From Ruditapes philippinarum (Eukaryota): DNA of 64,000 nt. The position numbers and the translations under genes are program-made. Each line of letters starts with the position of its first letter. Within the stretch, counting starts at the first letter, position 1. The notes beneath the pieces were generated by a model that was not told the origin of the DNA, made no database searches, and saw only the letters and a program-made list of their open reading frames with translations. Location: positions 248,001 through 312,000 of the forward strand of contig NW_026858977.1 of assembly GCF_026571515.1 (NCBI RefSeq), read 5' to 3'. Positions 9,430 through 63,354 of this stretch are shown one piece after another.

Positions 9430-9870
9430 ATATTTTGTTCAACACTTAAACCAATATTGAGTTTTGACAAAGTTGAGATGATCCAAAGACATGCCACGCG
9501 ATTAGTAAAAAGGGATTTCTCCCCACTCGCCAGCGTCACAGCCATGCAAGAAGAACTGGACTGGCGATCCCTTGAACATCGCAGATTCGACTGTAGACTC
9601 ATCATATTTTATAAGATATACCATAACCTAATTGCAATTAATCTCCCACCATATGCCCAAACCCAACATAGATTATCCATACATATACACCCCCTATCCC
9701 TACGAAAAAATACGGGTTTTCCCCCGGGCTCCCATAAGTACTCTTTTTCCCCTCAAAAATTATCAGGAATAAACCCTTATTTTTTTTTCCCCCTCCCCCA
9801 ATTTAAAAATAACTCAACGGGAAGGGTAAGATTGCATAAGTTTTGCTGCCGTGTTTTTAATTTTTAATCA
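9430..9870 (+). mobile_element. 5'-truncated non-LTR retrotransposon (LINE) ORF2 C-terminal fragment
   Basis: DKVEMIQRHATRLV...SVTAMQEELDWRSLEHRR...RLIIFYKIYHNLIAI is the typical post-RT C-terminus of CR1/L2-like LINEs. Confidence 0.8.
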
Positions 9871-11061
9871 TTATCTTTTATTTTTACTATTAAACATTCT
9901 AACCATGACTAAATACATTTCCAGTCTCACCTTTCTAGCAAGTTTATGATGCTTGAACTATTTTGCTTTTCTTTTACCTTCTACTAACAATCCGACGTAC
10001 ACTTATTTCCTGCCTGTAACACACATAAATAAGCATCAGTATGTAAAATGTGTCTAATTAATACAATAATCCACACAACACTTTCTTTAGGGAAAACATT
10101 TTAACTTGAAGAAGACACACAAAACCATCTGTGTTTTGTAGTAAATTAAATATACATTTTTTTGGCATATCAAACATACCTTTACTTCGAGTACAATATG
10201 GGTTTGATTTGGAACTTTGAAATTGAAAAGTCAAAAATAAGGCTAGATATTGAGAACGAATGATATAAAACCTTAAGACGTATTTAACTTGCAATGTAAA
10301 GCTTTTATTGTTTTGCAATTATTTACATGTCAAGTTCAAGTCGGGTTTCCATGTCGGGTTTTCGTATTCTTTGTTGTGGAATATCAACTGCAAAGATAAA
10401 GAATGCAAACATGGCTTTTCAAAAAGAAACACTTTACTTTAATATTTTTTTCTTAAATGTAGAGTCTAGATACATTCAACTTTATCCAGATAATTATGTT
10501 TCCAAATCAATAAACAAAGTCTTGTGTAGATACATAGATCCCTGACCTGTCTTATTCTAATAATCAGATAAGTGGATGCAATAAAAATTTCACCTAAATA
10601 TATTTGTTTAAAAAAGAGCACATATTAATGTTAAAATCTTAAATCTATTGTTATTCAAATAAAAAGGTTAGAATGGGGACCTATCAATTGATAGTCTTTT
10701 AATGCACTTTGATAAAATTTACAAATAAATATGGTTTGTTGTAAAGATACATTAAAAAGCTGTAAAAAAATGCTGTGATCATTATTTCAATTTTAAATAC
10801 ATATTTTTTACGATTCGAATGACGAAAGTTAAATCATGAAAACAGTGAATTCAGCACAATGAAACGTCCAAAAATGTACATAATTGTTAAACAAATTAGG
10901 ACAATAAATGTAATACAAGCAGCAGAAGGCTGTTTTAATCGAATATCTCTTAATGTTATTACTTAGACTTAATATCTAATTTAAAGGTCACGGTGCAGAT
11001 GGAACATTAATTTACAAATAAAAGAGAAATAAATAAAGGTAGACTTACCTAGTCAGTATAT

Positions 11062-12365
11062 TTATCCATTCCATGAACCCCATTTGGGTCTTGCAAACAT
11101 GCAACACATTACAAGTCTTTTGCATTTTTTGCAAAGGTTACATCTTCCGATGTATCTCTTATTCCATGGACATTTCTTCTGACATTTGCACCTGTTGTAC
11201 TGCCAATGTGTGAATGTCCTTCTACCCATGTAACTACGACCTCCAATACCACCGGCTCCACCAATCAAACCTCCGGCGGCTCCACCAGCTAAACCACTAC
11301 CTATTCCACCAATGTCTCCACCAAAGGAATATCCAGAGTAACCACCATCAACGCCTCCAAATCCATCATCTCCTCCACTATAGGACATACCACCACCTGA
11401 AAGTCCAGCGCCGCCTGAATATCCAAAGCCGCCCGTAAAACCATTGCCGCCTGAAAGTCCAATGCCGCCAGCAAATCCATCGCCGCCTGAAAATCCAATA
11501 CCACCTGCAAGTCCAGCGCTACCAGCAAGTCCACCACCGCCTGCTATATCGCCGATATAGGGATCGTAGGAGTAAATGCCACCGCCACCACCTCCACCTC
11601 CTAGATATCCATTGCTTAGGAGTCCCCTGTTATAACCAAAACGGTAGTAGCCCGGACGATATCCCGCAAACCATGGGAATTTTTTATGGTGATGTTTTTT
11701 CCGGCGCCCTGAAATATTTACACATTTTTTTACGAAAGAATTACATATTTTATAGAGTGATTGCTTTTGAAGGGGGTTTCAAGTATTTAGCGTCAGATCG
11801 ACTCTAGAGATAAGTATAAACTAAACCAAACAAATTTAACATTTCACGTAAGGAGTCGTGCTTCCTTTGCATCAATTAATTAATTTACTAGTGCAGTTCA
11901 CAACATATAACTTAACTTAACTATAAATCGTCGTCTGTTAAAAACAAGATTGCATACAGGAAACGTTATCTAGAACGTCAAATAAATGAAGCGTTGTATG
12001 GAAAAACCAACATATGAAACTTTGTTAGAAAAAAAATGAACGTTAGAAAAATCAGATATTGCTAATATTGAAATTTCAAAGCGAAAAAAATCTAAAAACA
12101 AAGTGATCCATCGGAAGCATTAATCACAACAAAATTTCTTGAACATTGCAGACTCGGTTTGATTGAGTATGTACATGAGAGATAATGAATAAGTACAACA
12201 TCCCTCACGCCAACTGGCACCGGCTTGAGTGGTATTCAATTCTGAAATAAATAAAATGATGTATTGTTAACAATAAAGAAAAGGTTCAATAGAATTTGAA
12301 AGAAAAATCCTACCTTCTGCAATGACCAGCAAAGCTAGGACGCAAAGAAAGACGGCAAACTTCAT
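11062..12365 (-). CDS. Gene A1: secreted Gly-rich protein with C-terminal 8-Cys cationic domain, 232 aa; join(12314..12365, 11062..11708)
   Basis: Exon 1 MKFAVFLCVLALLVIAE-G|GTAGGA; acceptor TTTCAG|GG; exon 2 continues in frame GRRKKHHHKKFPWFAGYRPGYY..Gly-rich..RCKCQKKCPWNKRYIGRCNLCKKCKRLVMCCMFARPKWGSWNG*; 52+647=699 nt. Confidence 0.92.
12100..12245 (+). repeat. Copy of a recurrent ~150-200 bp interspersed element (in intron of A1)
   Basis: ggaagcattaatcacaacaaaat...ttgcagactcggtttgattg...caacatccc...gcaccggctt; related copies at ~14320, 30367, 37180, 40580, 48020, 50890, 58010 and 60915. Confidence 0.7.
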
Positions 12366-16630: not shown

Positions 16631-18915
16631 GATCCAAAGTGAAACAGTTAAATTACCCCGATAGCAGTACGCACGTTAAATGCGTTCCATCCCCCACTGA
16701 GTGCCTAAAATTTTACCGATAGTCACGTGACATATGAGACAGATACCAGACGTTAGATTTGAAGAAATTTCTGCTATAAAATGATATTTATCAGCAGCTT
16801 TTTAATTTTAATTGGTCAGATGTCATTTGGTCATAATAAAAAGTTGTTAGAGTATGTTACCGCATCGTGTCACCCCCTTTGGTGTGATATTTGCTTGTTG
16901 TGCAATAATTTAGCGTTTGAGAGAGAACAGCCGATTGTAGTACATTATAAATAAACCTTTTGAGAATTGGAAACAAGAGCAATGTTAGGGCTTTATTATC
17001 CTTTAAAAATTCTTTATTGTTTAAAATAGAGTCTGGTTAAAGTCATAACTAGAGGTTGAAGGTTTGTCAAATGTTAACTCTTGGCAGTACAATATAAAAT
17101 GTGCATTTAGTTTGAGAGTTTGTGCGTTTTTATTTAATTGTAATTATAAATGGTTAAGTTTGATTTTTCAATTTATATATTTTATCTATCATAAATAAAA
17201 GTGTTTAGATTTTCAAGAAAATGCCTTTGTAAGCAGTTATCCAACATAATAATTACTGGTGAAAAAACAGTGATTTTTGGGAACAGAACATATTTTATAT
17301 AAAACGTATACAATACACGTATCTTGTGTATACAGCAGCCAAATTAAATACAAAATAAACGTGATGAAATTCTTCTTATGAAAGTCTTTTAAAACCTTTA
17401 TACTTTATCTGTATTTGTTTTATGTTGTTTTATTTACTTTTAATCTTATTCATTTATTTTTATTTATTTATTTTCTGTGTGGGGGTGGGTCAAGGTGATA
17501 TTTTAGTTGTAGCTTTAGTTGTCTTTCCACTCTATTTAAATTTTCAATCAAATATTTGTCCTTGACTGACAAATTTGGGGGTGTTTATGTTTGTTTCATT
17601 AGATATTTTGACCATAAATGATTTACAAATCGTATTGTTAAACTTAGTTGCTGTACAAGTTCTTCCTTACAGTGCTTTTATCAGAAAAGAAGATATTCAC
17701 TGTGTTAAAAACATTTATGTAATGTTTGGAGAAAACGATTAAAAATGTCTAAATTTCACATTAAAATGTGAACACGGTGTGTCTTAAAAGTTTTATATAT
17801 CCATTCATCTACCATTTTAATCAATGTTTTAAATTGGGTTTAGAGAACTTAGTAAATACACCCTTCTAAATTTAGATACGCAAATACACCCTTCTAAATT
17901 GAGATACGCAAGATTGAGAAAAGCAAAAATCAAATAAAAATGAAACCGTTAGTGTGATTTTTACTTGCAAGTTGTTATGTTCAATATCATCAACGTTCAA
18001 AACAACTTCAGAAATCTCATCATTCCACTCTTAGTACCATGTGTCGCTCTAGGATTTACGATACGACAGATATAATGAAACTTTTGAAATTAGAAAATCA
18101 GAACGGGGTAAGATAAACTACAGATGTTAAATAAACTATAAGACGAATATTTAGTTTGCAGAGTGTTAAGCTTTTATTAGTTTGCATTTATTTACATGAA
18201 AAGGTCATAGTTGATTTCCGTGTCGGTTTGATGTCTTCTCATTCTTTGTTTTGGAATATCATCTGCAAAGATAAAGCAAAAATGATTTTTGGAGAAGATA
18301 AGCACACAACGCAAACGCACTCACACACATTCACAAACGCATGCGCGCGCACACACACGCACGACTTAAAAAAACCTGTCTGATGAACACAATGATATCC
18401 CCTTTGCTTGATTCAGAAATGTAATAATAATAATAATAATAATAATAATTATAATACATGTAATAATTTAATATTACTCTAATATTTCTTTTGCTATTTT
18501 TAGATAAAGCTCAACCGTATCCAGATACTTATATTTTCTTACAACTTTACATTATCTTGTTCATTATCAATACTTCTCTTGAAAATGGGTGACAGAAATT
18601 TCCATAAAATTTTGTGATAATTAGTCAGTTTATAAAATATATTTTATATCGTTTGATTTACTAAAGTTTAATCATGAAATGAAGCAGTCGAAACAGTCTG
18701 AAAAGTCCAAAAATCAACACAAAGAATTGTTTAAAATATGCATTTACAAAATTGTTAAATAGAATTAAGGATGAGATTTTCAGACGGGATTTTAATCAAA
18801 TATCTTTCATGTTATACCCTTCACATAATTTCTGATTTTCAGGTAAAGTTGCGAATGGATATTTTTTTCATAAATGAAGAGTAAAAATAAAGGTAGACTT
18901 GCCTTGTCAGTTTCC

Positions 18916-21259
18916 TTATCCGGTGTAACGACCACCCCATTTGGGTCTAGTATACTTGCAGCATATAACTAACTTGCATCCTTTGCAAAGTTTACATTTT
19001 CCGATGTATCTCTTATTCTTTGGGCATTTCCTTTGACATTTGCACCTGTTGAACTGCCAATGTGTGAAACCTGACCTTCCACCCATGTAACTTCGGCCTC
19101 CAAATCCACCAGGACCACCAATCATACCACCAGGACCGCCAATCATACCACCTCCACCGCCAATCATACCACCAGCACCGCCAATCATACCACCAGCACC
19201 GCCAATCATACCACCAGCACCGCCAATCATACCACCGGGACCGCCAATCATACCACCAGGACCGCCAATCATACCACCAGCACCGCCACTTATACCACCA
19301 ACACCGCCAATCATACCACCAACTCCGCCAATTAAACCACCGGAGTATCCACCATCTAAACCACCGGAGTATCCACCATCGCCGAATCCACCATCGCCGA
19401 ATCCACCATCACCAAATCCAGAATAATACCCATCGTCACCGCCGCCTCCTAATCCATCACCCCCACTATAGAACATATCACCGCCTGTATATCTCCTGCC
19501 GCCCGCAAATGCAGCGGCGCCTGCAACTCCACCACCGGCCGCAAACGCAGCAGCGCCCGCAACTCCACCGCCTGACATGCCGCTAAAAAACGGATTGTAA
19601 GAATACATGCCACCACCACCACCTGGGAATCCGCCTGGAAATCCATGGCCTGGGAATCCGCCTGGAAATCCATGGCGTGGAAACCCCCTGTGAAATCCAA
19701 AACGGTAGAAGCCAGGTCGGCGTCCTGCAAACCATGGGAATTTTTTAGGGTGATGTTTTTTACGGCGCCCTGAAAAGTTATTCAAAATACAGACTGCATA
19801 ATAGTTACAAATATTAGGTTGAAAATCAAACAAATTAATTTTTTGATAAACATGTTGTTGTTTCGAAATTATAACATATATCATACATCGATTAGTTTTG
19901 CAGGGGGATGTCAACTATTTATCGTCATCTCGACTCTAGACGTTAAAATCAAACCTATTTTCATGTCACTTTAAGCTATTATGATGTAATTCTTGTTTTG
20001 TTAAATTTGATTTGTTTTTCTATGCAACAATTTATTGATTTACTATAGTTCAGTTCACCACACTTAATTACTAAATTTTTTACTAAATTTTATTTTATTT
20101 ATTGGTGTATACCCTCAGATGTCTGTAGAACAATGTATGATTTTAATATTATACTTCTAACTTTAGCCAATGCACAACACGCCTTTTAAATTGTGATGTC
20201 AACAAAAATACAAATATATATATAATAAACAGACAATTCAAGTTTTTTTCTATAAATACAGGTTTATTTTTCACCTTTTTGTACGAAAATCATATTTCAT
20301 TCGTTGCTATAGCACTCGATGAAAATATATCCTGTATTTATAGAAAATAATCTTGAATTTCCTATGTGTATAAAGATTTAAATAAATAGATATAATCAAC
20401 TTGTTTATTATTGCTATATATTAAAACAAAGATTAAACCGGCAACAGGAGATATAAAATTATTATATAAATTTTGTTTAAAATCAATTTTTTCCCTTTAA
20501 AATTTCTTCATAAATAAAAACATTATTAAAAGATTTTAAAGGCCTAAAATTTGCTGTGGAATAACTTTGAATTTTCTTTAAAAACCCTTTTCTTTATGTT
20601 ATTATTCTAAATTTTTAAAGGGTAAGGAAATTTTTTGTAGGGAAAAAAAGTTTTTAGTACAATGCCATATACTTTGAAATTTTTCAAGATATCTAAAAAT
20701 GTTAGAAATGCAAATACTGAAGTTATGGGATTTAAAAATTTTGGGCCAATAATAAACAAATTTTAAAACGGGCATGGGGAAATTATCAAAAACAAAAAAA
20801 ATGTGTTAAGAATTAGATGTGAAGCTTTATCCGCAAAATAGCAAATAATTACTTGTTTGCGAGGGAAAAATGCAATAAACATTGTCTATAAAACACCATT
20901 GTATGAAAACCTTGCCAGCTAGTATCCCAAACGTGTAGAATAACCAAGATATTAAACTTTGTCAACAATAATAGAATTATTCAACGTCTTCTATAAAGGT
21001 ATTCATTGTATATAAAGAGCGTTATCTTAAAATATTTAGAACCCCAAGCGTTGTATAGGAAAACCAATATATGAAACTTTGTTCAGAAAAAGCAATGAAC
21101 CAAATTTTGTTTAGAAAATAAATCAATGAAATTATGAAGCTAAGGCGGAACTGTTTAAAAGAGACGTTGTTAAGAATAAAGGAATAATGAAGAAGAATAT
21201 TACTTACCTTCTACTAGGACCAGCAGAGCTAGGATGCAAAGAAAGACGGCAAACTTCAT
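18916..21259 (-). CDS. Gene A2: secreted Gly/Met-rich protein with C-terminal 8-Cys cationic domain, 301 aa; join(21208..21259, 18916..19769)
   Basis: Exon 1 MKFAVFLCILALLVLVE-G|GTAAGT; acceptor TTTCAG|GG; exon 2 GRRKKHHPKKFPWF..(GFPG)..(GGMIGG[A/P/G])n..RCKCQRKCPKNKRYIGKCKLCKGCKLVICCKYTRPKWGGRYTG*; 52+854=906 nt. Confidence 0.92.
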
Positions 21260-27988: not shown

Positions 27989-30084
27989 TCATCCGCTACC
28001 CCATTTACGGCGTCTCCATGTGCAACAAATCACAAGTTTACATCTCTTGCAAAGCTTACACTTTCCTATGTAAAACTTGTTTTTCGGGCATTTCCTCATA
28101 CATTTACACCTGTCATATCGCCAGTGAAAACCGCCGGTCCAGCCCCCGTGTCCGCCGCCAATACCTCCATATCCACCGGAACCACCGCTAACACCTCCGT
28201 ATCCCCCACCACCACCGCCAAAACCTCCATATCCGCCGCCAAAACCTCCATATCCGCCATATCCGCCGCCAAAACCTCCATATCCGCCGCCAAAACCGCC
28301 ATATCCGCCGCTAAAACCTCCATATCCACCGTATCCGCCGCCAATACCCCCATATCCCCCATCACCATCATATCCACCACCAAAGCCGTTGCCATATCCA
28401 CCGTCATATCCCCCGTAACCATATCCACTCATGTAGCCTCCATATCCGCCAAATCGACCCCCATAACGCCAAGGACCCCATGGATGTTTCTTGTGATGGT
28501 GCTTTTTCCGACGGCCTATAATGAAAATTGTAGTTAGTTTATAATATAAAATGAAAGAGACTTTGAAACATTTGTGAAAAAATTATTGTACATACATGTA
28601 TGCAGTGTGTTTTAATAATTCCTGCACACACTTTCTTTACTAGCAATGATTGTAAGCCTGATTAAATGCACTTTTGAAACACAACAAACAAAGATATTGT
28701 AGTGTAAATAATTGAAGCGGATTTTTCATATCTATATTTTTAATGTGTAAAAAGACAATTAAAAAAGAATATTTGGTAAAATGACATTAGGTTTCAAGGT
28801 AAATTAAGTGCGTAAAAATGTGTTTTAGACTAAAATGACAAATCAAAATAAAACGATATATTCCCATAAGAAATGTATGAGAGCAGAAAATATGTCTTAT
28901 AATTTTCGTAAACATGCACAGTTCAGATACTCAGAGAAACTGGTGCTATTTTTGCATACTCGTGATTAATTTTCAAGAAAATTGTACTGAACTGAAGACT
29001 AAAGAACGCGTACAGATTTTAAACATTTGATCGCAATACGGCGTCGCAAAAGCGAAACATTTTAAACATTTAATTGTTTTACGTGTCGCAAAAGTGGTAT
29101 ATTTTAAACATTTAATCACATTATTTCATTTAGCATGTTTCAACATATATTGATACTAAAGCGACTTTGCATACCTTGATTTTTGACTCAGACAATTCTG
29201 TTTAATGATATTTTAATTAAAACTTTGGTGATATGGTTCCAATATGAAGAATCTTATTAGATGCAAAGTTTCGTCTGGTTGACAACTCTATGGTTCGGAA
29301 CATATTTTACAGTTTGGCTTAATATTGGTTGAAGAACTTATTGTTATTGGGGTTGTTTAATCTCTTGCAGTTCTTTAATATTAACCAATAAAGCTAAATA
29401 CAAACAGATAAATATTGACAAATAAAGCATTTTACTCTTTATCAATTATCAACATCCAATCATTGCTTTTAAATTTTACCAAATGACTAAATATATTCAC
29501 ATATTTGGCGCTCTAACTGCAACGTCAAATCTAACAATAAAAAGTCGAATGAACTTAATATAATTTGGGTACATAATTAAAAGGTGATACGAAATTATAC
29601 TAAAACAATGCGGGATTTATTGAGACTTGGACACAGCTGCTCATCCAATATTGTGTGTCCACCTGTGTACTTGTCCAAATATATACATGTACAGATTAAT
29701 GTTAATTAACAGATAAACACTGACAAATTAATAGAGGACATTGAATCTGAGGCTCGCAATTTTTTTTTATTCAACTCGTTCGATAAAATCAGAATTGAAA
29801 CATCGCGAATATAATATATTTATCCCAAATCTTAACAGTAGAAACGCGTCGCCCATGTAGTGTAACCCTAACATCTAGCGCGTTTTGTTGACGCTAAATA
29901 CTGTTTACACGGAGTCGCCAAAGCGGTACATAAATGTGACAAAAATTAGTAGAAACAGTTATATATAAACAAATGAAACTTCTGCATACAGATTAACATT
30001 GATTAGAAGTCTATGAATAAACGTACCTTCTGTTGTGACTGCTGCCACCACAAGGATTAAGAGTACGGCTAACAACACCTTCAT
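27989..30084 (-). CDS. Gene A3: secreted Gly/Tyr/Phe-rich protein with C-terminal 8-Cys cationic domain, 194 aa; join(30027..30084, 27989..28515)
   Basis: Exon 1 MKVLLAVLLILVVAAVTTE-G|GTACGT; acceptor TATAG|GC; exon 2 GRRKKHHHKKHPWGPWRYGG..(GGFGGGY)n..RCKCMRKCPKNKFYIGKCKLCKRCKLVICCTWRRRKWGSG*; 58+527=585 nt; TATAAAA at 30144-30150. Confidence 0.92.
29730..29943. mobile_element. Degenerate copy of the 21561-21938 element family (A3 intron)
   Basis: Shares gaggctcgca..ttattcaactcg and, inverted, gcgactccgt..gtatt. Confidence 0.55.
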
Positions 30085-34786: not shown

Positions 34787-35935
34787 TTAATATCTACAAC
34801 ACCTAATACGACATCTCCATGCTGTTCTGCAGCATTTTCCCATATATCGTTCATTGCGGCGACAATGTTTCCTGCATTTACAGTACCTAGGTCGACCAAA
34901 CCCTCCATATCCCGGGTATCCGTAACCACCGTAGTCGCCACCGCCACCGCCCCCGCCTCCATACATGCCATCCATGCCCCCTCCCATTCCAGTTCCTGGC
35001 ATCGTTATCGGCATTGGGTAACCACTACCCATCCCGGGCATCATTCCTGGCATCATTGCTCCGCCCCCACCGCCTATTAATATTTTGAAAAGTTAAATTA
35101 AATACCATGTGTTCAGGTTACCGGCACAACATTAAATTATATTATTCATATCTCCTTCAAAACAATATTATAATTATTGTCAAAGAAAATTTACTATAGT
35201 TAATGTAATTTTTTTTTATCTGTAATGCAGAACGTTTCGTTACATAATAATAAAAATATATGCCTTTTGTAAAAAGATTGTGGCAACATTGAATTATTAT
35301 TAAAAAACTATTATAACGCATATAACTTAGAAACAAAATGGAGCATGAATTACCCGAATATAGAAACATACAGAAATGTTATAAATGGAGGAAAATTACC
35401 TGAATAATCATCATCATACGGCATGCCATACTGTGGAGTTCCTGAAACAATACAAGTATTAATGTTATTGTTAAGAAAGTATTAGGAGTCTTTATTGAAA
35501 ATACATTCAACTGGCATTTTCAATATATTTTTTGTCTTAAAATGCGTACATTCTTCCAATATTTTACTATCGTTGCACTTTGTTGGGTACAGATAATAAA
35601 TCTACATTAAAGAACACGTTTGACAAATTTATAATCGTATTGTAAAACTAATATTTATAAATCTTACTGTCGCCAAACACGGCTTTGTTCAAGTAACGTT
35701 ATTATGTAATTTTAATGAAAGCGCTGTATCCGTATACAAATCTTTGTACCATATTGCACTGCTTCGCGGCCCCCGTATAATATGCTTACATATTTACATA
35801 TTATGAACCTTATGAACATATTATAAACGTAAAACAATACTTTAAATCAAGAATATAAAAACAAACAAACAAACTCTTACCTAGGACTGCGGCTAGGCAG
35901 CCAACTATGCACAGAAAGATGAGAAGTGTATCCAT
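34787..35935 (-). CDS. Gene D1: secreted Gly/Met/Tyr-rich protein with acidic micro-exon and variant 8-Cys domain, 127 aa; join(35881..35935, 35400..35441, 34787..35073)
   Basis: Exon 1 MDTLLIFLCIVGCLAAVL-G|GTAAGA; 42-nt phase-1/1 exon TPQYGMPYDDDYS (CAG|..|GTAATT); exon 3 GGGGGAMMPGMMPG..YCKCRKHCRRNERYMGKCCRTAWRCRIRCCRY*; 55+42+287=384 nt; TATATAAA at 35992-35999; exons conserved in paralogue D2. Confidence 0.9.
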
Positions 35936-41523: not shown

Positions 41524-41936
41524 TTAGTATTTCTTGCCCCTACAACACCAGATTTTCTATTTACAGCAAGATTGACACCAAGGACACCTGCCACTTGGAC
41601 TCTCTCCCCACCAGCATCGGTGTCTACATCTACATCTTCTGCCTCCCCAGCCATCCATTCCATATCCTCCTCCGTATCCACCACCAAAGCCGCCTCCCAT
41701 GCCACCGCCATAACCCATTCCGTATCCGCCGCCATAACCACCACCCATGCCACCGCCATAACCCATTCCATATCCGCCGCCATATCCCATGCCGTATCCA
41801 CCGCCAAAACCGCCACCCATGCCACCGCCATATCCCATGCCGTATCCACCGCCAAAACCGCCACCCATGCCACCGCCGTATCCGCCCCCATAACCACCGC
41901 CAAAGCAAGGCCACTTAAAGCATTTCTTACGGAAAC
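41524..41936 (-). pseudogene. E1 pseudogene: orphan exon 2 of an E-type gene with a nonsense codon
   Basis: Near-identical to E3 exon 2 but AAG>TAG at 41557-41559 removes KIWCCRGKKY; the upstream intron is cut at ~42335, so no signal exon or promoter is found. Confidence 0.85.
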
Positions 41937-42334
41937 CTTTAATAAAGTACAATAAGTTATGATTACAGTATTTTCTTGTTGTGCTTTATCTAGATAATTC
42001 ATCGTAGGGTCAAGTATTGGTAAAACCTTTATAAGTGTTTCATGTTTTCAGACGAATCCTCTTATATTAACTTTCTACTTTGCATGAAAGCGTAACCATC
42101 AATATGATAAAAGGTCATTCATGCACCTTCTAAGGCTTTAAACTATGATCTCATTCTGTACATAGTAACTTATATTCATTTAAGTGCACTTACATAGTAA
42201 TAATTATTGTGATGGACTCCTTTTTATCAAAGGGAAAATAAAAACAAAGCAACGTACATAAATAAAAGATACACTATTTTGTTTTTATTTCCCCTTTGAT
42301 ATAAAGGCAGGAATATCACTATGAACATATTATT

Positions 42335-42693
42335 TCACCAGCATCGGTGTCTACATCTGCATCTTCTGCCTCCCCAGCCACCCATTCCATATCCTCCTCC
42401 GTATCCACCACCAAAGCCGCCTCCCATGCCACCGCCATAACCCATGCCGTATCCGCCGCCATAACCACCACCCATGCCACCGCCGAAACCCATTCCATAA
42501 CCGCCGCCCCAACCACCGCAATAACCCATACTGTATCCACCGCCATAACCCATGCCGTATCCACCGCCATAACCGCCACCCATGCTACCTCCATAACCCA
42601 TGCCGTATCCACCACCATAACCCATGTCGTAACCGCCTCCGTATCCGCCCCGTGACCACCACCAAAGCAAGGCCACGGAAAACCTACGGAAAC
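42335..42693 (-). pseudogene. E2 pseudogene: truncated exon 2 fragment
   Basis: Acceptor AAAG|GTTTCCG retained, compensating frameshifts in the KWPC segment, Gly/Tyr/Met repeat, ends at RCRCRHRCW where it is fused to E1 intron sequence; intron homology stops at ~42860. Confidence 0.85.
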
Positions 42694-45209
42694 CTTTAAT
42701 AAATTACTATGAAGTATTCTTATTGTGCTTTATCTAGATGAGGCAATTGTAGGATAAAGTATGGGTCAAACCTTTATAAGTGTTTCCAAGTTTTCAGTGG
42801 ACGGACCCTCTATATGAACTTTCTATTTTGCATGGAAGCATAAACATTAATATGATATTTATTAATTATAATATAAAATAAGATACTAACAGCATTATCC
42901 ATTTGCTTTATTTAACCCTTACGTTGTTGGAATTGAAATATATAAGCTTTTACCAATAGAATACAGCAAGGCAAGTCTGCACTTCTTATCAGTCTCTAAA
43001 CTGTTGGTTACCCATTGTTTGTATTTTGATATATAGTACTTTATTTCAAGTTTTGTACTGATCCAATTTTAACGCAAGCGACCCGTGACGTAGTAGAAAC
43101 GCCACTGACGCGATAGGTAAGAGATGGGAACTACTCAAGTCGCTATGTGGACGCCATTATTGCCACAGGACGCCGAGCTACGGCGACTATTTTTAATATG
43201 TACAAAACAAAAGCTGAGGACCGTCATTTTATGGCGTCCAGAATGTCCCATTAACCCCATAGTCGCAGTTGTAACCACGTGAAGATCTCATGCACGTACT
43301 ATAAACGTACTGTAGATGTCGCATAAACGCACAAAAATTGTTTGACTTGTAATTGGCTATTCTATGGCGACTTTGAAGCGTCTGCAATGCGACCAGGTAG
43401 TTCCTGATATGACTATGACGTTTCCTGGACGCTCTTGTTGTCGCCATAAGGACGCCGCATATACATGTAATCTGCATAGAGGAAGAGTCGTAGTACAAAC
43501 TCTAAGAACGCACTGCAAACCCCGTAAGGTCGCACATAATTAACGCCGTGAGAACAATATAGGAACGCGGTACAAGCTCCATAAACGTACCGGAATCACA
43601 AAAAGAGGAGGCCGGTTTGAGCTAAAATTTGCAGTTTTGTTATTAAACGGATTCGGGGTTCCTTGTGCGACTTTTCCGAAACATATCGGTTTAGATTGAC
43701 GCAATAACGCTATTTGGGTGATGACAGTGTTACACACATGCAGCAGGTCAAGGTTCAAAGCATTTTAGTATTTTCTTGCAATACTGAGGTTTCTTAATTC
43801 TTTTTTATCAAATCATCAATAAAAGTTTTAGAACAATGAACATATACAAGTTGAAAGTCAAAAGTCACCGACTTCATGGGGCTTTTAACACTGCCTTTTC
43901 ATACATTGAAAGCAAAAGGTTTATTTGGTTGAATCAATTATGCAAATAATGACGAAAACAATTTACGTAGTTTGATGTTAATGGTATAATAACTGTATAT
44001 ATACTGTTCAATATCAGATTACTGCATGTATGTATGTTACCGCCTCAAACAGTTTACCTACGAGCTAGATATTCCTGTCAGTATCGGCAGCCGGTGTAAA
44101 CCTTATAATATACCATCTATTGGTGTTTCTTGACTCTTTTAAGACGGTGCAAGATTTGCTATTTCTGAGCAAAATGTTTATTATAGAATATATATGTAGA
44201 GTGTAATTAAGTGACTGCAGTTTATGTGCTTTTTATATGCTTTTACTATGAGAAGTTTAATACATGAAAAATGCTAATATAAGGTCGATATATTTTTGTA
44301 ACAATGTAAGTACATTGTACTTGCAAGCATATATATTCGGCAACAGAAATTATGCTCTTCAGTACTGTATGAAAAAAAAAAACAGTAAATTAATTTAAGT
44401 GTTTTCTCCCCTTAACTAAATTTGGAAACTCCACCTATTCCGAGTTCCAGTTTACATCTATTGGCTCTAAATACCTATCAGATATTTTATGTTTAATAAA
44501 ATTGCTGTTGTTATTAAGAAACAATACTTATAGTTTAGAAAGTAAGAAAACACATACTGTACTGCAGTATTTTAATGCGATAAAGCAATGTTAACAATAA
44601 GAATATATATAAATAATAAACAATTCAAGCTGTTCGGACGTCATGTACTCCAGATGTTGTTATACCCTGAAATTGAACGAAAAAATACACACTAAAAAAA
44701 TAACATTTCATAAGTAATGGACATACAATAAATAGTATATAACAACTCTTATGGTTTCTACTGCAAGTTGCTGTCAAGAATTTCATTAAGCTATGAGACA
44801 ATTATGAATAAGTGAAATTTTATAGAATTTTAATAAAAATTATACATAAACAAGATAAATTTGCAGGTGTCCGTTCATATAACTTGTAGGATGATATTGT
44901 TATTGATTGCAATCATTGTAAAAAGTAATCTGTTTTTTGAGGATATGTTTAAACTTTGAACCTTCTAGCCACAACTATGGCTTCACATGCAACAGGTACA
45001 TACTAAGATCACCCGGCACATCTCTTTGCCTTCTTATCATCTGCACTTTTATTTTATATTTTTCCAGTACTTATTTATATTTTTTTCCTAAAATGGTGAA
45101 TGGTTTGGTTCAGTTGGAAAATTCTATTTAAGATATTAAGCGTGGTCAGGGTTGAATTGTATAGACTTGAGAGTGCTCGAACATCATGATAATAGTGTTT
45201 ATGTACCTC

Positions 45210-46550
45210 TTAATATCTACAACACCTAATACGACATCTCCATGCTGTTCTGCAGCATTTTCCCATATATCGTTCATAGCGACGACAATGTTTCCTGCAT
45301 TTACAGTACCTAGGTCGACCAAACCCTCCATATCCCGAGTAGCCATAACCACCGTACTCGCTACCGCCACCGCCCCCGCCCCCGCTCCCATACATGCTAT
45401 CCATGCCCCCTCCCATTCCAATTCCTGCAGCGTTATCGGCATTGGGTAACCACTACCCATCCCGGGCATCATTCCTGGCATCATTGCTCCGCCCCCACCG
45501 CCTATTAATATTTTTAAAAAATGAATTAAATATCACGCGTTCAGGTTACCGGCAAGAAATAATATTATGTTATTCACATCTCCTTCAAAACAACATTATA
45601 ATAAATCTCAAAGAAAATTTACTATAGTTAATGTAAATGTTTCTTTATCTGTAATGTAGAAAGATTCGTTACATAATAATAAAAATATAAACCTTTGTAA
45701 AATGATTTGACAACATTGAATTATTATCAAAAACACTATTATAACGCGTATAATTTAGAAACTTTTAGAAATGTTATAAATGGAGCAGAATTACCTGAAT
45801 AATCATCGTCATACGGCATGCCATATTGTGGAGTTCCTGAAACAATACAAATGAGTCATGCCATGACAAAACCAAGATAATGCGTTTGCGACCAGCATGG
45901 ATCCTGACCAGCCCGCGCATCCGCGCAGTCTGATCAAGATCCATGCTGTTCGCTTACAAACCCTACAAGTAGAGACAGCGAACAGCATGGATCCTTATCA
46001 GACTGCGCGGATGCGAATGCTGGTCTGGAGCCATCCTGGTCGTAAAGGCATTATGTTGGTTTTGTCATGTCGCGGCTCAAATATTAATGTTATTGTGCAG
46101 AAAATATTAGGAGTCTTTATTGAAAATACATTGAACTGGCATTTCCAATTTATTTTTTTTTTGGTCATACAATGCGTACATTCTTCCAATATTTTACTAT
46201 TGTTGCACTTTGTTGCGTACAGATAATAAATCTACATTAAAGCACACGTTTGACAAATTTATTATCGTATTGAAAAACTTATATTTATAAATCTTAATTT
46301 CGCCAACCATGGCTTTGTTCAAGTAACTTAATTGTTTAATTTTACTGAAAGCGCTGTATCCGTATACACATCTTTGTACTATATTGCACTGCTTCGCAGC
46401 CCCCGTATAATATTTTTACAGATTTACATATTATGAGCCATATAAACGTAAAACAATACTTTAAATCAAGAATATTGAAACAAACAAACACTTACCTAAG
46501 ACTGTGGCTAGACAGCCAACTATGCACAGAAAGATGAGAAGTTTATCCAT
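45210..46550 (-). pseudogene. D2: paralogue of D1 with a 1-nt deletion in exon 3 (pseudogene or assembly error); join(46496..46550, 45795..45836, 45210..45501)
   Basis: MDKLLIFLCIVGCLATVLG / TPQYGMPYDDDYS / ACG CTG CAG GAA vs D1 ACG ATG CCA GGA at ~45427; 55+42+292=389 nt, not a multiple of 3; splice sites, TATA and Cys domain otherwise intact. Confidence 0.75.
45851..46080. mobile_element. Palindromic ~230-bp MITE in D2 intron 1
   Basis: ~100-bp inverted arms (atgagtcatgccatgacaaaaccaa.. / ..ttggttttgtcatgtcgcggctca); empty site in D1 at ~35455 (tacaagtattaat). Confidence 0.9.
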
Positions 46551-48988: not shown

Positions 48989-50156
48989 TTAGTATTTCTT
49001 GCCTCTACAACACCAGATTTTCTTTTTACACCAAGATTTACACCAAGGACACCTGCCACTCGGTCTTTCTCCCCACCAGCATCGATGTCTACATCTACAT
49101 CTTCTACCTCCCCAGCCACCCATTCCATATCCTCCTCCGTATCCACCACCAAAGCCGCCTCCCATGCCACCGCCATAACCCATGCCGTATCCGCCGCCAT
49201 AACCACCACCCATGCCACCGCCATAACCCATTCCATATCCGCCGCCATATCCCATGCCGTATCCACCGCCAAAACCGCCACCCATGCCACCGCCATATCC
49301 CATGCCGTATCCACCGCCAAAACCGCCACCCATGCCACCGCCGTATCCGCCCCCATAACCACCGCCAAAGCAAGGCCACTTAAAGCATTTCTTACGGAAA
49401 CCTTTAATAAAGTACAATAAGTAATGGTTACAGTATTTTCTTGTTGTGCTTTATCTAGATAATTCATCGTAGCGTCAAGTATTGGTAAAACCTTTATAAG
49501 TGTTTCGTGTTTTCAGAGGAATCCTCTTATATAAACTTTCTACTTTGCATGAAAGCGTAACCATCAATATGATAATTTAAGGTCATTCATGCACCTTCTA
49601 AGGCTTTAAACTATGATCTCATTCTGTACATAGTACCTTATATTCATTTAAGTGCACTTACATAGTAATAATTATTGTGATGGACTCCTTTTTATCAACG
49701 GGAAAATAAAAAACAATGCTACGTACATAAATAAAAGATACACTATTTTGTTTTTATTTCCCCTTTGATAAAAAGGCAGGAATATCACAATGAACATATT
49801 ATTTTATGACAAATGGTACAACCGAAAATATTTACAAAATATTGACAAGTTAAACAGTTAATAAAGAGGAACAGTTGAGAAATTGAATAAATTAAACTAA
49901 TTAAAGATAATAAATATAAAACTCAAAGAAAACTAAATATATATTCTATTCAAGTAAATGACAGTAAACGTACATTCTTTTTATGTATGGAATATGTTCC
50001 CTGGAATAATTATGATAATACTTAAATGATAATGATATAATAATGATAAGGTGAAGATTAAGAAGGACACAAAGCAAAAAAGAATAGCTCACCAAATACC
50101 GCTGGCACTATCAGAACAGCCAAACAGGCTACAAGTAGAGTTGTTGAAACCTTCAT
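48989..50156 (-). CDS. Gene E3: secreted Gly/Tyr/Met-rich protein with N-terminal Cys pair and C-terminal 8-Cys Trp-rich cationic domain, 158 aa; join(50093..50156, 48989..49401)
   Basis: Exon 1 MKVSTTLLVACLAVLIVPAVF-G|GTGAGC; acceptor AAAG|GT; exon 2 FRKKCFKWPCFGGG..RRCRCRHRCWWGERPSGRCPWCKSWCKKKIWCCRGKKY*; 64+413=477 nt; TATATAAA at 50212-50219. Confidence 0.92.
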
Positions 50157-55522: not shown

Positions 55523-56142
55523 CTAGTACTTGTGCCTGCAACACCAGACCTTCTTGCAAAATTTACACCAGGGGCATCTGCCTCTGGGTTTTTCTCCCCA
55601 CCAACATCGGTGTCTGCATCTGCATCTTCCACCAAAACCTCCTCCCCAGCTCATACCGTAACCTCCGCCGTAACCGCCACCATAACCGCCGCCATAGCCA
55701 CCGCCAAAGCCCACTCCATATCCACCGCCGAATCCACCGCCGAATCCGCCTCCATATCCACCACCGAACCCTCCTCCGTATCCGCCTCCAAATCCGCCTC
55801 CATAGCCTCCCATATAACCACCACCTCCATAGCAGGGCCACTTATAACATTTTCTTGAGAAACCTTAAAAATAAATTAGTTGCTTCTGTTTTGATGTCAT
55901 AATTATCTAGCCAAATTGCTTCTTGTACATTGTTATGTATTTCTTTTAAATTTATTGTTATTTTACAAATGTATCATCAAACTGTATCTTTAATGTGTTT
56001 ATTTATAATATCTCCTTTACAGTATTTAAAAAACCAGCAATTATAACGATAACGAAAAGATAACGACAAATGACTCACCTATTGCTGTTGGTGCCAAAAG
56101 AGCTGCTAAGCAGACGATAAGAAGAGTGGCAGCAGATCTCAT
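55523..56142 (-). CDS. Gene F1: secreted Gly/Tyr/Phe-rich protein with N-terminal Cys pair and C-terminal 8-Cys domain, 134 aa; join(56079..56142, 55523..55863)
   Basis: Exon 1 MRSAATLLIVCLAALLAPTAI-G|GTGAGT; acceptor TTTAAG|GT; exon 2 FSRKCYKWPCYGGGGYMGG..RCRCRHRCWWGEKPRGRCPWCKFCKKVWCCRHKY*; 64+341=405 nt. Confidence 0.92.
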
Positions 56143-62725: not shown

Positions 62726-63354
62726 CTAGTACTTGTGCCTGCAACACCAGACCTTCTTGCAAAATTTACACCAAGGGCATCTGCCTCTGGGCCTTTCACC
62801 CCACCAACATCGGTGTCTGCATCTGCATCTTCCACCAAAATCTCCTCCCCAGCTCATACCGTAACCGCCACCAAATCCACCGCCATTACCGCCACCATTA
62901 CCCGCCGCCAAAGCCACCTCCCAAAGCCCACTCCATTATCCACCGCCGAATCCACCACCGAACCCGCCTCCATATCCACCACCGAATCCTCCTCCGTATC
63001 CGCCTCCAAAATCCGCCTCCATAGCCTCCCATATGCCACCACCTCCATAGCACGGCCAACTTATGACATTTTCTAGAGAAACCTAAAAAAAAATTAGTTG
63101 CTTCTGTTTTATGTCATTCTTATCTTGCCGAATTGCTTTCTTGTACTTTTGTATTTGTATTCTTTTTAATTTATTGTTAATTTTCAAACTGTATTTTTAA
63201 TGTGTTTATGTATTAATATCACTTTTAAAAGTATTTTAAAAAACCAGCAATTATAACGAAAACGAAAAGATAACGAAAAATGACTCACTTAATGCTGTTG
63301 GCGCCAAAAGAGCGGCTAAAGCAGACGATAAGAAGAGTGACAGCAGATCTTCAT
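62726..63354 (-). pseudogene. F2: paralogue of F1 with multiple frameshifts; exons ~63289..63354 and 62726..63082
   Basis: ATG AAG ATC vs F1 ATG AGA TCT plus several other 1-nt insertions in both exons; the Cys domain RCRCRHRCWWGERPRGRCPWCKFCKKVWCCRHKY, splice sites and TATA/Inr are intact. Confidence 0.75.

Follow-up and report, generated by a model that had tools for sequence, protein, structure and literature searches.

An array of glycine-rich protein genes with an eight-cysteine tail in an alpha-defensin-type frame in the Manila clam

The window analyzed here is a stretch of 64,000 nucleotides from the Manila clam, Ruditapes philippinarum (contig NW_026858977.1, positions 248,001 to 312,000). 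It is AT-rich eukaryotic DNA (G + C content ~32%), free of N runs. Its minus strand carries ten copies of a gene for a glycine-rich protein with a signal peptide and a small, cationic, cysteine-rich C-terminal tail. An earlier note had located six of these tails, at 11062–11190 (A1), 18916–19044 (A2), 27989–28108 (A3), 34787–34882 (D1), 48989–49099 (E3) and 55523–55624 (F1). Translation of the minus strand recovered all six at these positions, with eight cysteines each. The tails were 31–42 residues long and had 11–14 Lys or Arg, 0–1 Asp or Glu, a net charge of +9 to +14 and several Trp, Tyr or Phe. The extreme case singled out before, A3, does have 15 Lys or Arg and no Asp or Glu, counted from the Arg before the first cysteine to the end. 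The order of the cysteines was the same in all tails: C-x-C-x3-C-x9-C, then two further cysteines, then a terminal CC.

A six-frame scan of the whole 64 kb for C-x-C-x3-C-x9-C returned only this family, that is, the six reported copies and three more (41584–41634, 45255–45305 and 62777–62827). Since there were no background matches, the tail frame is not due to chance. The tenth copy, truncated, was found in the lists of open reading frames (ORFs). The earlier count of six intact genes holds insofar as six appear intact; the other four copies seem broken. An E-type copy (41524–41985, minus) shares 97% identity with E3 and has an in-frame stop within the tail (41557–41559), making it a probable pseudogene. 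The truncated copy (42335–42703, minus), an E-type fragment, stops just past Cys3. D2 (45210–45500, minus; signal exon from 46550) shares 96% identity with D1 and has an intact tail (45210–45305), with a frameshift from a 1-bp deletion in the Gly-rich part, which may reflect either a pseudogene or an assembly error. F2 (62726–63080, minus) also has an intact tail (62726–62827), and several 1-bp indels in its Gly-rich part relative to F1. The 1-bp indels of D2 and F2 fall within runs rich in G, and they may be errors of assembly instead of marking true pseudogenes.

All six intact genes had the same layout. A signal-peptide exon (17–21 residues plus one base) ends in a GT donor, and an intron of ~0.2–2 kb with an AG acceptor leads to exon 2, which encodes the remainder. 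This sole coding intron is in phase 1 in 6/6 genes and lies right after the signal peptide. In A1 (minus strand, as are the others), exon 1 (12314–12365) has 17 codons plus one nucleotide before its GT donor and phase-1 intron. Exon 2 of A1 (11062–11708) is one open frame past the acceptor and contains a basic lead RRKKHHHKKFPW, a Gly-rich region (32% Gly) and the tail, which extends from the Cys1 codon to the stop codon, has a net charge of +12 and ends in Gly. The corresponding exon 2 and signal-peptide exon were at 18916–19769 and 21208–21259 for A2, 27989–28515 and 30027–30084 for A3, 34787–35073 and 35881–35935 for D1, 48989–49401 and 50093–50156 for E3, and 55523–55863 and 56079–56142 for F1. 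In the D1 tail Cys4 and Cys5 are adjacent. E3 and F1 have ten cysteines in total, the extra N-terminal pair of E3 being in KKCFKWPC.

The tail therefore has no gene of its own but forms the final part of a long Gly-rich exon, and exon 2 always had the order basic lead, Gly-rich repeat region, tail. The A-type lead reads RRKKHH.KK(F/H)PW. The lead of the E and F types reads (R/K)KC-x-KWPC and contributes a fifth cysteine pair. The Gly-rich region is ~50–230 residues long, with 32–47% Gly plus Tyr, Phe and Met, and its repeats vary among paralogues. The C-termini of the D, E and F types are CCRY in D, RGKKY in E3 and RHKY(Y) in F. The proteins had 12–23% aromatic residues and an isoelectric point (pI) of 9.6–10.0, and lengths of 94–283 residues. 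All database queries described below were made with exon 2 or the tail alone.

Expression was assessed in coded RNA runs, which carry no tissue labels. A contig from run X5 spans 11052–11700, approximately A1 exon 2, and diverges from the genome at a GTAAGT donor ~10 nt past the stop codon. Because it leaves the genome exactly at this donor, A1 is transcribed and has an intron in its 3′ untranslated region (UTR). Transcription and splicing are thus shown for at least A1. In run X1, short contigs with a k-mer depth of 10^4 to 7x10^4 fell on exon 1 and on the first parts of exon 2 and of the tail, all of them common to the A-type paralogues. The depth in two raw-read RNA runs was about zero. Set against the high depth in X1, this indicates that expression seems to range from very high to absent, depending on the library. 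As a side observation, A2 has GGCAAGT (18894–18918) where A1 has GTAAGT (11040–11064), and the 3′ UTR site may not be common to all paralogues.

To place the family, a profile of the tail was compared with 1.84 billion representative proteins, and only three clusters were found. One of them (P0002) consists of RefSeq XP_060601559.1 and its neighbors, from R. philippinarum, with the same architecture as the genes in the window. RefSeq has named these proteins automatically “keratin, type I cytoskeletal 9-like”, “holotricin-3-like” and “keratin-associated protein 21-1-like”. The XP_060601559.1 cluster is identical to L008, an F-type gene just beyond the window; L008 and L009, another F-type gene outside it, carry the RefSeq models XP_060601558-61. 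P0001 and P0003, the other two clusters, come from ENA or Logan assemblies and consist of unnamed proteins of the A type. Within the 1.4-Gb assembly of the clam itself, 17 places matched the tail profile. Fifteen were in one head-to-tail array of ~95 kb on the minus strand (contig C7464), and two were on separate contigs. All 17 genomic tails end a Gly-rich open frame, and a stand-alone tail was not found among them.

A homologue search with three tails returned self matches or nothing, and an ESM Atlas search with two tails gave no usable match. In the literature, no paper naming these genes was found under the RefSeq names or among clam Gly-rich or Cys-rich proteins. The gene family is undescribed and clam-restricted. 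At least 11 apparently intact genes of the Manila clam, a major aquaculture species, at present either lack an annotation or carry a wrong name of the keratin-like or holotricin-like kind.

The tail is the conserved part of these proteins. Eight cysteines and one Gly were invariant across 15 aligned sequences, two of them from other samples, although tail identity fell to 32–49%. The Gly-rich part changes fast and could not be aligned between A-type members from different samples. The invariant Gly lies two residues before Cys4. The earlier note had proposed an invariant G-[KR]-C at this place, which is true within the window; in the wider family the Gly is fixed and the next residue can be K, R, T, S or Q. 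The ratio of nonsynonymous to synonymous substitution rates (dN/dS) of the tail was 0–0.5 in recent pairs. In older pairs the synonymous sites were saturated, with dN just 0.13–0.29. By these ratios, the tail is under purifying selection. The invariant cysteines and Gly, together with the low dN/dS, mark the tail as a constrained and presumably folded module.

All eight A-type tails (those starting at 11062, 18916 and 27989 in the window, the genomic copies L013–L015, and P0001 and P0003) end in Gly after a conserved (K/R)(W/Y)G, and this terminal Gly may be a C-terminal amidation signal. An RR or RRR shortly before the tail was present in A1, L014 and L015, and absent in A2, A3, P0001 and P0003. 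One unlinked member, L013 (G000:C9243:61428-64556, minus 1483-2337), encodes 285 residues with the same tail. Between its Gly-rich blocks, a basic RRCWKKPCPPKKYRGG motif occurs twice and resembles the lead KC-x-KWPC found in E and F genes. It suggests that there is a second small module, a disulfide loop, which can occur in repeats.

The earlier note had seen in the tail a beta-defensin in which the Cys1–Cys2 spacing had shrunk to one. Our comparison does not support this, because a spacing of one, with x3 and x9 after it, belongs to the alpha-defensin frame (C-x-C-x3-4-C-x9-C, with Gly two residues before Cys4). The frame C-x-C-x3-C-x7-G-x-C was present in 17/17 genomic copies and in P0001–P0003. 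Against all PDB sequences, the tail profile gave five matches, all with defensins: a beta-defensin analogue, hBD4, a rhesus mucosal alpha-defensin, RMAD4 and an equine alpha-defensin. These matches were non-significant (E values of 0.6–5, best E = 0.58). The rhesus alpha-defensin 2k1i aligned over the whole frame, with Cys1–Cys4 and the CC matching cysteine for cysteine, and with further matches at the Arg after Cys2, the Glu at Cys3+4 and the Gly at Cys3+8. In alpha-defensins, this Arg and Glu form the salt-bridge pair and the Gly is the bulge glycine. All three residues are present in the tails of the D, E and F types and of the genomic copy L016, and the Glu is the only acidic residue of these tails.

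Alpha-defensins (2k1i, HD5, HD6, HNP4 and the cryptdins) and the clam tail thus have an identical Cys1–Cys4 frame, a terminal CC and a strong cationic charge. Sequence similarity between them is non-significant (E 0.7–7.7), and there are clear differences. Alpha-defensins have six cysteines and a last loop of ~9 Cys-free residues, whereas the clam tail has eight, with two extra invariant cysteines in a last loop of 10–12 residues. Alpha-defensins are made as mammalian myeloid or Paneth-cell prepropeptides with an anionic propiece; the clam tail lacks such a propiece, follows a long basic Gly-rich region and comes from a bivalve. The disulfide pairing of alpha-defensins is 1–6, 2–4, 3–5. Reports of alpha-defensins are limited to some mammals, and descriptions of trans-defensins give them six cysteines (PMC7203481).

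In beta-defensins and in the Cys-rich domain that ends bivalve big defensins, the Cys1–Cys2 spacing is 4–8 and the Cys4–CC spacing 4–7, against 1 and 10–12 in the clam. Membership in the beta-defensins is not supported, as no family member had their six-Cys frame (C-x4-8-C-x3-5-C-x9-13-C-x4-7-CC) and there was no significant profile match. The N-terminal domain of big defensins is hydrophobic and globular, whereas the N-terminal part of the clam proteins is Gly-rich. Genes of big defensins and beta-defensins have a phase-1 intron directly 5′ of the Cys domain (PMC7203481). No such intron directly precedes the clam tail, the clam intron being ~60–240 codons upstream of it. Cis-defensins, with the CS-alpha-beta fold, were also rejected: they need a CxxxC on the helix and a C-terminal CxC, while the clam frame opens with CxC on the N-terminal side and closes with CC. 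The WAP/crustin, hepcidin, mytilin/myticin and CS-alpha-beta frames were set aside for their different cysteine order.

Pfam detected no family at E ≤ 10 in seven tail or exon queries. A search of the clam genome with PF14862 (Defensin_big) gave no match in the array, and its three sub-threshold matches elsewhere translate to junk. In single-sequence searches of the PDB, the L016 tail found nothing and the D1 tail found one plant-type defensin (6nom), the sole cis-defensin match, at E = 0.38, which is not meaningful. A second PDB profile was set aside because the N-termini of P0001 and P0003, long and Gly-rich, had contaminated its alignment; this profile returned noise, namely an antibody, Vif and nuclear receptor zinc fingers. 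With no significant match and no intron at the defensin position, membership in any defensin family is not supported. The resemblance to alpha-defensins in frame and key positions most likely stems from convergence, judging by these comparisons. We propose that the label “alpha-defensin-type frame with an extra Cys pair” should replace that of beta-defensin.

The earlier note had also suggested structure prediction of the tails followed by a Foldseek search, and the two tails modeled gave different answers. The AlphaFold2 model of the A1 tail, from an alignment of eight sequences, had three strands, and its C-x2-C pair lay in a helix of one turn. Searched with Foldseek against the PDB (E ≤ 10), it gave 37 matches, of which 36 were alpha- or beta-defensins and one was helianthamide, whose fold is beta-defensin-like. 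The best match was hBD4 (E = 0.64, probability 0.80). After re-alignment, alpha-defensins made up 12/13 of the top matches, at 1.9–2.5 Å over the full length, compared with 2.5–4.1 Å for beta-defensins. The Foldseek matches included the salt-bridge-deficient cryptdin-4 and an HNP4 Gly mutant. The F1 model, in turn, matched nothing convincingly.

The trans-defensin fold is the only one with any support for the tail, from the profile matches and the A1 model. This fold consists of three antiparallel strands, and its disulfides depart from the final CC strand in opposite directions. Going by the models, we give about an even chance to the tail truly having a trans-defensin-like fold. The interpretation given earlier is supported in part. 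A conserved cationic cysteine module, its CC end, the GxC at Cys4 and the hints of a trans-defensin fold all stand; the label “beta” is not supported, given the alpha frame, the lack of any significant match and the missing intron.

The remainder of the protein resembles molluscan shell-matrix proteins. Shematrins and KRMPs are Gly-Tyr-rich with a C-terminal RnKmY signature, and KRMPs have a Lys-Trp lead after the signal peptide (PMC3896809). KRMPs have a pI of 9.5–9.8; their Gly/Tyr region binds chitin and their basic region modulates CaCO3 growth (PMC4498902). Shematrin genes occur in lineage-specific tandem arrays (PMC4759782). The clam proteins share with these pearl oyster proteins the signal peptide, a short basic K/W lead, GnY-type repeats and a basic pI (9.6–10.0 in the clam). 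They also share the lineage-restricted tandem arrays, and the D, E and F types end in R/K...Y. For the RnKmY signature and the Lys-Trp lead the picture is mixed: E3 ends in RGKKY and F in RHKY(Y), with RKC-x-KWPC as the lead of both types, D ends in CCRY, and the A type has a ...W-G-x-G end and the lead RRKKHHHKKFPW. The clam proteins differ from KRMPs and shematrins in having the 8-Cys module between the repeats and the C-terminus. Type II crustins and other arthropod antimicrobial peptides (AMPs) with a Gly-rich and a Cys-rich part have the same order of signal peptide, Gly-rich region and Cys-rich C-terminal domain. In crustins, however, this domain is a WAP four-disulfide core with the CC in mid-frame, whereas the clam tail has the CC at its end and no Pfam WAP match.

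In the reading we prefer, to which we assign a little less than an even chance, the clam protein is secreted and of matrix type, and its tail, a cationic knot of four disulfides that came to resemble defensins by convergence, binds anionic surfaces. The tail would fold in the secretory pathway into a compact knot, built around a small sheet of three strands as in trans-defensins. The extra cysteine pair would bridge the lengthened last loop, with I–VIII, II–IV, III–VII and V–VI as the likely pairing. The Gly/Tyr region would work as the repeat domains of KRMPs and shematrins do, in self-association, chitin binding and cross-linking. The tail could then serve as a protease-resistant polycationic head (+9 to +14) on acidic matrix, mineral or microbial envelopes. 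With such a head on a matrix-like Gly/Tyr region, the protein is most likely a component of an extracellular matrix or coating. Antimicrobial activity is plausible; if present, it would probably be secondary.

Several observations weigh against this reading. The A1 model is weak (predicted local distance difference test, pLDDT, of 60), and AlphaFold may merely echo the cysteine pattern. The F1 tail model (15 sequences, pLDDT 64.5) has just two paired strands, and its Foldseek search gave three weak matches, all defensins, with root mean square deviations of 4–6 Å; the model had no VIA match. The A-type tails keep the Gly and lack the Arg and Glu, having Gln or Met for Arg and Lys for Glu. The resemblance to KRMPs and shematrins is one of composition and architecture only.

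One rival reading is a structural protein whose tail does not have a defensin fold. Its cysteines would form intermolecular disulfides or cysteinyl-DOPA-type cross-links locking the Gly/Tyr matrix, and the alpha-like spacing would be coincidental. Such a tail would suit the poorly structured F1 model, the non-significance of all defensin similarity scores, and the KRMP- and shematrin-like composition, pI, termini and tandem array (PMC3896809, PMC4498902, PMC4759782). We nevertheless consider it unlikely. Eight cysteines and a Gly are kept exactly across subfamilies at 32–49% tail identity, and the scaffold persists in older pairs with saturated synonymous sites. The D, E, F and L016 tails have a lone acidic residue, which falls exactly at the alpha-defensin salt-bridge position, and pairing within the molecule would agree with the even number of cysteines (8, or 10 if the N-terminal pair is counted). 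A metal-binding module, in which CxC, CxxCxxC and CC would hold zinc or another metal in a thiolate cluster as in metallothioneins or zinc fingers, is highly improbable. CxC, CxxC and CC are typical metal ligands, and there were weak profile matches to the second zinc module of nuclear receptors (E 5–7). These matches were no better than noise, however, and came from the profile contaminated by Gly-rich flanks. Moreover, the signal peptides lead one to expect oxidation in the secretory pathway, and tails so rich in aromatic residues, Lys and Arg are unlike metallothioneins.

A host-defense effector is also unlikely, though less so than a purely cross-linking tail. It would be a two-domain antimicrobial polypeptide of a Gly-rich region, of the sort seen in type II crustins or Gly-rich AMPs of arthropods, and a defensin-like knot, secreted by hemocytes or epithelia, with the tail binding or disrupting microbial envelopes as big defensins and alpha-defensins do. 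The high positive charge of the tails with their several aromatic residues, structural matches solely to defensins, and expression in some libraries only would all fit such an effector. So would an array with gene birth and death and pseudogenes, and the automatic name “holotricin-3-like”, which mirrors a Gly-rich, AMP-like composition. The Gly at the end of all eight A-type tails, as a possible amidation signal, and the RR or RRR before the tail in A1, L014 and L015, as a possible processing site, point the same way. The dibasic sites are not conserved, however, being missing from A2, A3, P0001 and P0003, and the tail is always coupled to the Gly-rich region. Diversifying selection was not detected in the tail, and a length of 94–283 residues, the GnY repeats and the RnKmY-type end look more like shell matrix.

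The matrix-type reading has a bolder form, of which we are doubtful. The family would be a molluscan lineage of the trans-defensin fold that reached the alpha frame independently, gained a fourth disulfide and became permanently fused to a self-assembling Gly/Tyr matrix domain. If this were true, the clam would have a “defensin-armed” structural coating (shell, periostracum or mucus), acting both as scaffold and as antimicrobial barrier. A bivalve alpha frame with the Arg, Glu and Gly positions and an added disulfide would stand as a clean example of convergence, or else of an unexpected reach of the defensin scaffold. The fixed fusion to KRMP- and shematrin-like repeats joins two usually separate fields, those of biomineral and matrix proteins and of host-defense peptides. 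The tails, at 31–42 residues, are short enough for direct synthesis and testing.

Two other features of the window were recorded. A 136-residue ORF at 9457–9867 (plus strand) looks by eye like the C-terminal end of a retroelement polyprotein, and Pfam gave no significant family for it. Within the A1 intron, a segment of ~160 bp (12088–12249) had a read depth of ~1000 or more in RNA run X21, and its k-mer depth was very high in each of the four runs. Many of its reads continue into unrelated sequence at either end. The segment looks like a high-copy, transcribed interspersed repeat, similar to a short interspersed nuclear element (SINE) or a miniature inverted-repeat transposable element (MITE).

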